Position numbers and translations under genes: made by a program
Shown: positions 56,371-59,496 of the stretch, piece by piece
Position numbering within the stretch: position 1 is the stretch's first letter
Layout of the letters: each line of letters begins with the position of its first letter
Sequence record: PQ898602.1
DNA: 64,000 bases
Reading direction: 5' to 3' (one strand)
The notes under the pieces: generated by a model
The model's input: the letters and a program-made list of their open reading frames with translations, nothing else
What the model was told of the DNA's origin: nothing
Database searches by the model: none

Positions 56371-56400
56371 TTGACGTGACCCCCACCAATATACTAAGAT
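56371..56400 (+). promoter_or_regulatory. Sigma70-type promoter in hairpin loop upstream of tRNA array
   Basis: ggggtc-TTGACG-t-gacccc; TAAGAT at 56395-56400 (N18). Confidence 0.5.
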
Positions 56401-56527
56401 TGATTAGTGAATTGGAAGGTTCTTACCAACTCCTCAAGTATATGGGGTTTTCTGAAGACCAAGAGACCATTGACAAACTCAAAAGTAAGTACTATACTAT
56501 GTACTTCAAGGAAAAGAAAAAGGTCGA

Positions 56528-56599
56528 GGGTCATTAGTTAAGTGGATATAACCTCCGCCTTCTAAGCGGATGTCCCAGGTTCGAGTCCTGGATGACCTG
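56528..56599 (+). tRNA. tRNA-Arg(TCT)
   Basis: GGGTCAT/ATGACCT acceptor, loop CTTCTAA, GGTTCGAGTCC. Confidence 0.93.
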
Positions 56600-56604
56600 C
56601 CTAA

Positions 56605-56676
56605 TCCTCTTTAGCTCAGCGGTAGAGCGAACGACTGTTAATCGTTTGGTCCCTGGTTCGATCCCAGGAAGGGGAG
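56605..56676 (+). tRNA. tRNA-Asn(GTT)
   Basis: TCCTCTT acceptor, loop CTGTTAA, GGTTCGATCC. Confidence 0.95.
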
Positions 56677-56796
56677 TAGCGGACTTGGCATACGTCCGTA
56701 CTCACGTCTCCGAGAGAAAAAAGAATCGGAAATCCAACCCATGTGAGTGAGAGGTGGGATCCCTCTTGGTGCTACCGTTGCTGACGAGTGGCGGTT
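56676..56796 (+). ncRNA. Unidentified structured RNA between tRNA-Asn and tRNA-Leu
   Basis: Five to six helices visible by eye in 120 nt with no ORF role. Confidence 0.55.
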
Positions 56797-56803
56797 ATTA
56801 TTA

Positions 56804-56885
56804 GTCGATGTGGCGGAATTGGTAGACGCGCTGGTTTTAGGTACCAGTTCTTTCGAGAGTGAAGGTTCAAGTCCTTTCATCGACA
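56804..56885 (+). tRNA. tRNA-Leu(TAG)
   Basis: GTCGATG acceptor, GGTAGAC D-loop, loop TTTAGGT, long variable arm. Confidence 0.93.
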
Positions 56886-56886
56886 C

Positions 56887-56915
56887 TTGACAATCATATT
56901 TTTCTCTGGTATGGT
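56887..56915 (+). promoter_or_regulatory. Sigma70-type promoter inside tRNA array
   Basis: TTGACA-N17-TATGGT. Confidence 0.6.
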
Positions 56916-56923
56916 TGTCTTAT

Positions 56924-56998
56924 GCGGGTTTAGTTCAGTGGTAGAACGTCAGCCTTCCAAGCTGAATGTCATCGGTTCAAATCCGATAATCCGCTCCA
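56924..56998 (+). tRNA. tRNA-Gly(TCC)
   Basis: GCGGGTT acceptor, loop CTTCCAA, encoded CCA. Confidence 0.93.
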
Positions 56999-57070
56999 GC
57001 TTGAATAGCTCAGCGGTAGAGCATCTCCTTTACACGGAGGCGGTCGGGGGTTCGATCCCCTCTTCAAGCA
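56999..57070 (+). tRNA. tRNA-Val(TAC)
   Basis: GCTTGAA/TTCAAGC acceptor, loop TTTACAC. Confidence 0.93.
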
Positions 57071-57103
57071 TATATAAAGTCCAAACAAAAAGAAGATTCA
57101 TTA

Positions 57104-57310
57104 ATGTGGAGAATCTGGTGTTATGCACTCGGACAAAAAGAAGGCAGATCCAAACGAGATGCGGACAATATTGCTATCATACGTACTATTATACTCCTTT
57201 CTTATTTGGTTACTAATTTTTTTATTACTGCAGGAGTAATCAGACATTGGAATGCAAATACTTGTAAGGAATATTTGAATGGACAAAATCCCATATCTCA
57301 GGAAAGATAA
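57104..57310 (+). CDS. Small membrane hypothetical protein
   Basis: MWRIWCYALG.K.G...AD.IA.IRT. Confidence 0.7.
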   Translation: MWRIWCYALGQKEGRSKRDADNIAIIRTIILLSYLVTNFFITAGVIRHWNANTCKEYLNGQNPISQER

Positions 57311-58851: not shown

Positions 58852-59496
58852 ATGAAGATCTTTATTGACACCGCACAGACCTCTGAAATCCATAGTGCAT
58901 TTCAGACTGGTCTAGTTGATGGTGTTACAACAAATCCATCTCTCATCATGAAGAGTGGTCGCGATCCTGAGGATGTGTATCAAGAACTGATTGAAGCAGG
59001 TATTCCTGATATCAGTATGGAGGTTGTCGGTACTGTTGGTGAGATGTATAATGAAGGTATCCGTCTAGCTGAAAAGTTTGGAGACCAAGCCACTATCAAG
59101 TTGCCTTGCACTCCTGATGGTTTGCAGGTTTGTCGTCATCTGACCGCAAAAGATATTCGTACTAATGTTACCCTTATCTTCTCTGCTTCTCAGGCTGTAC
59201 TTGCTGCAAAAGCTGGTGCAACTTACATTTCACCTTTTGTTGGTCGTCTTACCGATAATGGTTTTGATGGTCTTGAATTGATTCGTACTATCTACGAAAT
59301 CTATAAGAAGGACGGATGTCCTACCGAGATTCTTGCTGCATCTGTACGTAGTCCAGAAGTTGTTGCCCTTTGTTATCGTGAAGGTGCAGACATTTGTACT
59401 ATTCCCCCAGGTGTTTTCAACAAGATGTATGAAAGTGTCCTGACCCGTGAAGGACTTGCTATTTTCCAAAAAGACTGGGATTCTATCCAGAAGTGA
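58852..59496 (+). CDS. talC: Transaldolase (TalC family)
   Basis: MKIFIDTA, DGVTTNPSL, IKLP, NVTLIFS, SPFVGRL. Confidence 0.96.
   Translation: MKIFIDTAQTSEIHSAFQTGLVDGVTTNPSLIMKSGRDPEDVYQELIEAGIPDISMEVVGTVGEMYNEGIRLAEKFGDQATIKLPCTPDGLQVCRHLTAKDIRTNVTLIFSASQAVLAAKAGATYISPFVGRLTDNGFDGLELIRTIYEIYKKDGCPTEILAASVRSPEVVALCYREGADICTIPPGVFNKMYESVLTREGLAIFQKDWDSIQK

Follow-up and report, generated by a model that had tools for sequence, protein, structure and literature searches.

Sequence record PQ898602.1 holds the 244 kb genome of Synechococcus phage S-SCSM2R, from which a stretch of 64,000 nucleotides (nt), hereafter the window, was analysed. Five plus-strand transfer RNA (tRNA) genes are called in the window by ARAGORN and Rfam. 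The gap between two of them, tRNA-Asn and tRNA-Leu, is exactly occupied by a 127 nt element on the same strand (window positions 56677–56803), which is 100% identical to positions 180677–180803 of the phage genome. The original prediction, made from the letters of the window, had placed a compact structured RNA here, abutting tRNA-Asn and stopping 7 nt short of tRNA-Leu. The gene calls agree, as tRNA-Asn ends at 56676 and tRNA-Leu starts at 56804, 7–8 nt after the last hairpin of the element. The element belongs to a real, conserved family of structured RNA genes in cyanophage tRNA arrays, which we found neither named nor annotated. Its members comprise a core of ~100 nt and a variable 3′ hairpin, and the whole element measures ~100–125 bases.

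Among 50,697 phage records searched by BLAST, the element was matched in 17, representing 11 distinct Synechococcus myoviruses (S-SCSM2R, Sf-CH11, Sf-CH1a, Sf-CH1b, Sf-FR1, S-8S53, Bellamy, S-CAM3, S-CREM2, S-SCSM1, and S-H34), with a single copy in every record. It was also found in at least 146 loci of IMG/VR viral contigs; these were retrieved with two DNA patterns, and more exist. The covariance model gives one match in the window (56676–56775, 101.7 bits, E = 1e-20) and one match per genome in five isolates (104–117 bits). In all isolates the element (X) lies beside tRNA genes, the identities of which vary (Asn-X-Leu, Asn-X-Val, Ala-X-Asn, Gly-X-Asn, Asn-X-Thr). The upstream tRNA can be Asn, Thr, Arg, Ala, Gly or Leu, and the downstream tRNA Asn, Thr, Pro, Val, Ala or Leu. 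Its position, within a tRNA array or at the head of one, is constant while the adjoining tRNAs vary, and its distance to the tRNA end is fixed despite the changing neighbours. Only T4-like cyanophages of marine Synechococcus carry the family, as a movable module of their tRNA arrays.

The element carries no annotation in any of the 17 GenBank records, and the only RNAs reported in the S-SCSM2R genome paper are tRNAs and two cis-regulatory RNAs from Rfam. At the gathering score, Rfam 15 detects only the five tRNAs in the whole window, and at E ≤ 10 nothing in region 56400–57200 falls on 56677–56803. The families without a match there include manA, wcaG, glnA, PhotoRC, Cyano-1/2, Yfr, C4, 6S, SRP, and ribozymes. 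ARAGORN and the Rfam tRNA model (RF00005) call the five flanking tRNAs and not the element. The original prediction had asked for the Rfam comparison and had judged the sequence to be neither manA nor wcaG, which these searches bear out. Its remark that manA resides in cyanophage tRNA arrays was mistaken, manA being described as a motif of the 5′ untranslated regions (UTRs) of metabolic genes. Its suggestion of a possibly undescribed non-coding RNA (ncRNA) stands. The diagnostic motifs of the element are absent from those Weinberg 2010 alignments that are available as text, and we found no published description, although it may still be listed, unnamed, among the 10,006 candidate viral RNAs of PMC10690425.

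In the window, the parts of the element are arranged as follows.

56677–56679, plus strand: 5′ leader UAG (family consensus UAA), immediately following the upstream tRNA's discriminator base
56680–56698, plus strand: P1 hairpin, CGGAC (56680–84) with GUCCG (56694–98), loop L1 UUGGCAUAC (56685–93)
56700–56748, plus strand: helix P2, ACUCACGU (56700–07) with AUGUGAGU (56741–48), enclosing P2a and joining strand J
56708–56731, plus strand: P2a hairpin, UCCGA (56709–13) with UCGGA (56726–30), 12-nt A-rich loop GAGAAAAAAGAA (56714–25)
56731–56740, plus strand: joining strand J, AAUCCAACCC, with the invariant CCC (56738–40) as proposed partner of the P3 loop (pseudoknot PK2)
56749–56767, plus strand: P3 hairpin, GAGAGG (56749–54) with CCUCUU (56762–67), 7-nt loop UGGGAUC (56755–61) containing GGG (56756–58)
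56768–56775, plus strand: 3′ tail GGUGCUAC, with GCU(A) (56771–74) as proposed partner of (U)GGC (56686–89) in L1 (pseudoknot PK1)
56774–56795, plus strand: P4, the 3′ hairpin, ACCGUUGC (56774–81) with GUGGCGGU (56788–95), loop UGACGA; swappable and terminator-like
56796–56803, plus strand: 3′ trailer UAUUAUUA, reaching to where RNase P would cut tRNA-Leu

Helix statistics were obtained from 89 full-length elements and 100 core sequences, all from distinct homologues. P1, P2, P2a, P3, and P4, each of which the original prediction had listed (P3 as (G)AGAGG/CCUCU(U) without the bracketed pair), are 83–100% paired, with compensatory changes in all five. A covariation check, as it had called for in general terms with R-scape, gives scores of 0.24 and 0.18 for the two sets, against 0.03–0.07 when the partners are slid, and none of 500 shuffles reaches the observed value. 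In P1, where some rows are misaligned, 83–84% of alignment cells are paired; C–G is exchanged for G–C or G–U and A–U for G–C, and the covarying columns are 5:22 (CG, GU, GC) and 8:19 (AU, GC). P2 is 99.8–99.9% paired, with A–U replaced by G–C at two pairs (columns 28:70 and 30:68, changing on both sides). At the base of P2, a mutual-information scan found the flanking columns 24:74 to be G·A in 95 sequences and A–U in 4, a switch that explains why P2 spans 8 base pairs (bp) in the window. The same scan found columns 32:56, the wobble-type closing pair of P2a (C56708·A56731 in the window), to be C·A in 91 sequences and U·G in 9. Both of these non-canonical exchanges are isosteric and lie at helix ends. 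P2a itself is 100% paired. The first search pattern had fixed its sequence, whereas the second left it free and recovered compensated variants, in which CCGA/UCGG becomes CCAG/CUGG (two compensatory pairs in seven unique sequences). Its A-rich loop, GAGAAAAAAGAA, is near-invariant across homologues. P3 is 99.4–99.5% paired, with both-sided changes at four of its six pairs, and P4 has 85% of cells paired and both-sided changes at all seven pairs. One further stem of the original prediction fared differently. GUAGC (56676–80) and GCUAC (56771–75) are complementary as it stated, but they do not form a closing stem, as only 10% of cells are paired in the homologues; the stem also borrows the last base of tRNA-Asn.

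G·U pairs are frequent (U26·G72 in 20 sequences, G75·U93 in 79), so only the plus strand, which is that of the tRNAs, fits the structure. One-base indels occur among homologues in J and in the A-run, which excludes a coding reading. Short open reading frames (ORFs) that cover the element overlap the tRNAs, and the 1-nt indels break their frames.

Among the 146 IMG/VR loci listed, the 3′-end of a tRNA abuts the conserved 5′ UAAC/UAAG in 110, and in the first IMG/VR scan the upstream tRNA was found to end 29–35 nt before P2a. In 26 loci without an upstream tRNA, the sequence TTGACA-N17-TATAAT is found instead, with its −10 box ending 7–8 nt before the same UAAC/UAAG, in several unrelated upstream contexts. 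A tRNA end and a promoter are two independent routes to the same 5′-end, and this is the strongest argument for a discrete RNA. On the 3′ side, a tRNA follows 5–10 nt after the 3′ hairpin in most loci. We consider it likely that the element is a discrete small ncRNA that is co-transcribed with the tRNAs from an early promoter, excised by tRNA-processing enzymes, folded into a compact pseudoknotted form, and active in trans. Release of a discrete RNA by tRNA processing had been anticipated in the original prediction, and the strong covariation and the 5′-end shared by promoter and tRNA loci accord with it, the evidence for a stable transcript being indirect.

The tRNA genes of the window and the promoter-like sequence at their head are as follows.

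56470–56498, plus strand: promoter-like TTGACA-17-TATACT, ~30 nt upstream of tRNA-Arg (consensus scan, 11/12 matches)
56528–56601, plus strand: tRNA-Arg (ARAGORN, Rfam)
56605–56676, plus strand: tRNA-Asn(GTT) (ARAGORN, Rfam tRNA model), the 3′-end of which sets the 5′-end of the element; no CCA encoded
56804–56886, plus strand: tRNA-Leu(TAG) (ARAGORN, Rfam), the 5′-end of which would set the 3′-end of the primary excised fragment
56924–56998, plus strand: tRNA-Gly (ARAGORN, Rfam)
56999–57070, plus strand: tRNA-Val (ARAGORN, Rfam)

Judged by its consensus match, TTGACA-17-TATACT is likely to be the promoter of an Arg-Asn-element-Leu unit. The consensus scan also picks out TTGACA-17-TATGGT with an extended −10 TG at 56887–56915, in the 37-nt spacer between tRNA-Leu and tRNA-Gly, which might serve tRNA-Gly and tRNA-Val as an internal promoter.

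A tRNA 3′-end lying 0–3 nt from the conserved 5′-end, as in ~75% of loci, is the same criterion that applies to theta ribozymes (PMC10879173). The core is compact (~100 nt) and combines many invariant unpaired bases with two probable pseudoknots. These features would suit a new class of self-cleaving ribozyme that cuts at its own 5′ edge to make the 3′-end of the upstream tRNA, as has been proposed for theta ribozymes. We regard this as very improbable. No Rfam ribozyme family, including those of the hepatitis delta virus (HDV) type, matches at E ≤ 10, and the topology is unlike the HDV type, the 5′-end forming a local hairpin and not the P1 of a nested double pseudoknot. A promoter and not a tRNA lies upstream in 26 loci, host RNase Z already accounts for the cut, and a metatranscriptome contig crosses the junction between tRNA and element. 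Should the double-pseudoknotted core nonetheless be a new small self-cleaving ribozyme class, or another catalytic or ligand-binding RNA, that cuts the 3′ trailers of marine cyanophage tRNAs, for which we see an equally slight chance, the theta-ribozyme principle would extend to ocean viruses with an unrelated fold, and the family B described below would be a second, smaller version.

At least six unrelated hairpin types occupy the position of P4 across homologues, and the copy in S-H34 lacks P4 altogether, its core ending ...GCCACCA directly at the 5′-end of tRNA-Val. Of 109 unique sequences, 73 have a UAUU-like motif after P4. Since P4 together with the UAUU(U) behind it is flagged as resembling a terminator, the core could be imagined to act in cis, either by sensing a signal and controlling read-through of a P4 terminator into the tRNAs, or as a leader for processing or stability without a life of its own. 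The core always lies 5′ of P4 and usually 5′ of a tRNA, it comes first after the promoter in 26 loci, and a conserved pseudoknotted core with a variable hairpin resembles the layout of aptamer and expression platform. Such a role is nevertheless improbable. The tract after P4 reads UAUUAUUA in the window and is poor in U in many copies, unrelated hairpins replace P4 or, in S-H34, nothing does, and no anti-terminator pairing between core and P4 is apparent. The element is also found mid-array, directly after another tRNA. Downstream lie at least seven types of tRNA, and loci without a following tRNA have HNH-like or oxygenase-like genes, or none adjacent. This heterogeneity, in which no consistent set of related downstream genes can be recognised, argues against a gene-specific cis-regulator or riboswitch.

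Two tertiary contacts are proposed for the core. In PK2, CCC (56738–40) of J would pair with GGG (56756–58) of the P3 loop, which is plausible. The original prediction had drawn a longer pseudoknot, GUGGG with CCCAU, of which the core CCC:GGG is invariant; it was not confirmed as a conserved feature, and its outer two pairs compete with P2 and P3. The CCC is invariant in 99–100 of 100 cores, and when IMG/VR was scanned specifically for changes of its last C, none turned up. The S-H34 copy carries a correlated double change (CCC to CCA and loop A to G) that permits a shifted 3-bp PK2 pairing, and loci L048 and L082 have in common A-to-G and U-to-C changes compatible with a different register. 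These events are too few to decide. PK1, newly proposed here, would pair the UGGN of the P1 loop with N′CC(-A) of the 3′ tail after P3. The loop always reads U-G-G-N and the tail N′-C-C(-A), and rare loop variants are compensated: A11:U in 2/2 cases (first G), A12:U in 1/1 (second G), and U13:A in 6/7 (N). The mismatches are A13 opposite G in 46/108 sequences, the commonest P1 type, and C13·A in two. In a permutation test, 31 of 2000 permutations reach the observed value, and targeted scans yielded no further P1-loop variants. Taken from the alignment, this pattern is suggestive of PK1. A T-box-like function was also considered and rejected, since the fourth base of the UGGN loop shows no agreement with the discriminator of adjacent tRNAs (by inspection only).

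With both contacts formed, the element could potentially imitate a tRNA, P3 corresponding to the T-arm, CCC:GGG to the D-loop/T-loop elbow and the pairing of P1 loop and tail to the acceptor stem. As such it would be recognised by RNase P, RNase Z or the CCA-adding enzyme, or would serve as a decoy for a host defence nuclease that targets tRNAs. Its restriction to tRNA arrays, where it is bounded by tRNA processing sites, is consistent with this idea, as is P3 with its 6-bp stem and T-loop-like 7-nt loop (U at position 1, A at position 5). The S-H34 copy without P4, which ends in GCCACCA exactly where tRNA-Val begins, would also fit. The best outside matches of the model, although insignificant, fall on tRNAs (for example T4 tRNA-Ser, 8.8 bits), with P1, P2, and P3 on the anticodon, variable, and T arms, and the small RNA RNAC of phage T4 has a canonical T-arm sequence. 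We consider the idea unlikely all the same. ARAGORN and the Rfam tRNA, transfer-messenger RNA, and tRNA-like models give no match, there is no anticodon-like 7-nt loop with U33, and PK1 has 2–4 bp against the 7 bp of an acceptor stem. In most copies, the NCC after the tail is the start of the G+C-rich P4, and it is absent in type B hairpins. A few copies depart from the T-loop pattern at positions 1 and 5 (UGGGGUC, CGGGAUC), and no correspondence between the fourth P1-loop base and the discriminator of the adjoining tRNAs is seen by eye.

A second family of array RNAs bears on both contacts. We sought divergent copies of the element in the tRNA arrays of S-RIM44, S-H9-2, S-RIM32, S-WAM1, S-BM3, and Sf-CH5, which have no BLAST match, and found only a weak one in Sf-CH5 (11 bits, E = 0.5), directly after tRNA-Asn. 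From this match an unannotated RNA of ~70–80 nt was traced, here called family B (Sf-CH5, PV340852.1 positions 122406–122477, L371:2749–2820), which is also present in S-SKS1 (L372) and Sf-CH8. It has no match in Rfam. In 94 marine metagenome loci (among L373–L491) family B abuts tRNAs, the upstream ones being Asn (47), Met (29), Thr (5), Arg (3), and Ile (1), and the downstream ones mainly Val, Leu, and Thr. Three consecutive hairpins are followed by a long hairpin and then the tRNA. The tail that follows hairpin 3 (GCUC, ACUC, GCCC) is paired with the hairpin-1 loop (GAGC, GAGU, GGGC) in 44/44 unique sequences, with two covarying positions. The loops of hairpin 2 (AACCA) and hairpin 3 (7 nt, UGGUU) are complementary to each other. 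The wiring proposed for the element is the same, and family B thus supports PK1 and PK2 by analogy. The two families have a common architecture and a similar P3 (GAGAG/CUCUC in family B), whereas family B lacks P2a and the A-rich loop and differs in the sequences of P1 and P2. A model match of 11 bits (E = 0.5) is too weak to show common descent, and the likeness is one of architecture. A further element of ~72 nt, closed by CAUUACA...UGUAAUG, was observed 3′ of family B in Sf-CH5 (L371:2818–2890). It occurs alone, at 76–93% identity, in S-T4, S-TIM5/54/61/66, Syn1, S-RIM44, S-SM2, S-PRM1, S-CAM9, and S-8S55, where it is unannotated or lies under ‘hypothetical protein’ calls, and has no Rfam match.

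In a contig of metatranscriptome run X6, tRNA-Asn is fused to tRNA-Leu with CT between them and 126 nt (window 56677–56804) skipped; therefore, close marine relatives that lack the element exist. The copies in L047 and L109 are cut inside P3 (loop UGGAAUC) and followed directly by a talC-like gene, and look like decayed or recombined copies. In about a dozen loci, among them L018, L030, L031, L075, L106, and L006 (S-CREM2), the element is separated from the next tRNA-Asn by an extra module of ~45 nt, which contains a GGAC-UUYG-GUCC hairpin. Cys-rich ORFs resembling HNH endonucleases adjoin the element or the tRNA array in L020, L026, L039, L062, L113, L120, L123, and S-CREM2 (L006:1–364). They recall segB in the T4 tRNA cluster and may account for the movement of the module. 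The phage talC transaldolase gene of the window (58852–59496) has its best matches among prokaryote genome contigs in Caulobacterales, Fusobacteria, Firmicutes, and archaea (42–55% identity), with no cyanobacterial locus among the 80 matches listed.

The isolate distribution of the element is patchy, its tRNA neighbours are varied, HNH-type endonuclease genes lie nearby in some loci, and two copies are truncated. On these grounds, the element might be no functional RNA but a conserved spacer, a target of recombination or homing, or a selfish DNA repeat that travels with tRNA genes. We disfavour this as hardly credible, given the strand-specific compensatory changes and G·U pairs in five helices, the single copy per genome, and the dedicated consensus promoter at a fixed distance.

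As a discrete small RNA, the element would be made in the following way. Transcription with the phage tRNAs would start at a host-type sigma-70 (early) promoter. An enzyme of the RNase Z type, in trimming the 3′-end of the upstream tRNA, would create the 5′-end of the element, which in copies at the head of an array would be the transcription start instead. RNase P cleavage at the 5′-end of the next tRNA would make the 3′ side, and P4 would then shield the 3′-end. The freed RNA would fold into P1, P2/P2a, and P3, tied together by the contacts of the P1 loop with the 3′ tail and of CCC with the GGG of the P3 loop. This fold would present the almost invariant A-rich loop, and the RNA may then act in trans on a protein or RNA partner in the infected cell.

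Expression was assessed from assembled metatranscriptome contigs. Parts of the element are present in eight RNA-library runs, and across 56450–57150 the contigs of four runs from three studies cover the element at a depth similar to the neighbouring tRNAs, with zero depth over flanking coding DNA. Several results weigh against a discrete trans-acting RNA. The expression data are assembled contigs of relatives from RNA libraries that may contain DNA, and their depth sums over relatives; contigs of this kind cannot show ends, strand or the absence of DNA, and thus lend weak support to expression. Some contigs run from tRNA-Asn into the element, and these may stem from precursor not yet processed, or from DNA. 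The minimum free energy (MFE) fold of the window sequence reproduces P1, P2, P2a, P3, and P4, but it is no better than that of shuffled sequences (z = −1.26; −0.98 for the other strand), so nothing is concluded from one sequence and the comparison of homologues decides. As CCC and GGG are both invariant, covariation can neither support nor refute PK2, while PK1 has only 2–4 bp and is imperfect in the commonest P1 type. P4 with its U-rich trailer is flagged by the consensus scan as weak-terminator-like, which suits a cis role. A search of the window for antisense targets showed no enrichment of the A-rich loop's complement, and no partner or target was found. Finally, the best matches of covariance model R1 in the T4 tRNA region have E ≥ 0.2 and lie mostly on tRNAs, which gives no homology to the T4 RNAs considered below.

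The tRNA arrays of T4-like cyanophages, viruses that kill a large share of marine Synechococcus, tend to be discussed as a codon supply only. At least one conserved, intricately folded RNA that is not a tRNA, and probably a second, is encoded in the arrays as well. These RNAs are modules that move between arrays, some with their own consensus early promoter, and they are frequent in uncultivated marine viral contigs. With cultured phage-host pairs, the role that small RNAs play in phage tRNA clusters can be put to the test. An alignment and a model with which to define a new RNA family are ready, and annotations can be corrected in at least 11 published genomes.

Among known phage RNAs, manA (RF01745) and wcaG (RF01761) are structured RNAs of T4-like cyanophages and marine metagenomes that were, like the element, found by comparative genomics. 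Both are located in 5′ UTRs of metabolic genes, where a cis-acting role is assumed for them; the element, by contrast, lies between tRNAs, has no consistent downstream gene, and matches neither model. The HDV-like theta ribozymes adjoin phage tRNAs in gut phages of Bacteroidota and Bacillota (PMC10879173), and share with the element a structured, pseudoknotted form and a 5′ edge at the 3′-end of a tRNA (PMC10879173). They differ in that their nested double pseudoknot is built from the 5′-end, where the element has P1, a local hairpin supported by covariation.

The closest parallel is found in phage T4 itself. RNAC (139 nt) and RNAD (119 nt), the species 1 and 2 RNAs, are expressed and of unknown function (PMC9697503, PMC3014915). 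Neither is in Rfam. In the T4 tRNA cluster they lie right after tRNA-Arg, rnaD beginning 1 nt past it. With filters off, covariance model R1 gives its best score in the T4 tRNA region on tRNA-Ser (8.8 bits), and 5.0 bits (E = 1.5) on rnaC. As there is no similarity in sequence or to the model, the comparison is one of analogy only. RNAC has a canonical T-arm, which the element lacks, and RNAC and RNAD are classed as late RNAs (PMC9697503), whereas the element has promoters of the sigma-70 type. The likeness is one of setting. In both cases, an RNA of similar size is encoded in the tRNA cluster of a T4-like phage, on the tRNA strand and a few nt from a tRNA 3′-end. The element is a positional analogue of RNAC and RNAD, and probably a functional one as well. 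The sixty-year-old puzzle of the T4 RNAs thereby gains a second, independent and much better sampled system, with well over 100 natural variants, clear helices, and candidate tertiary contacts.

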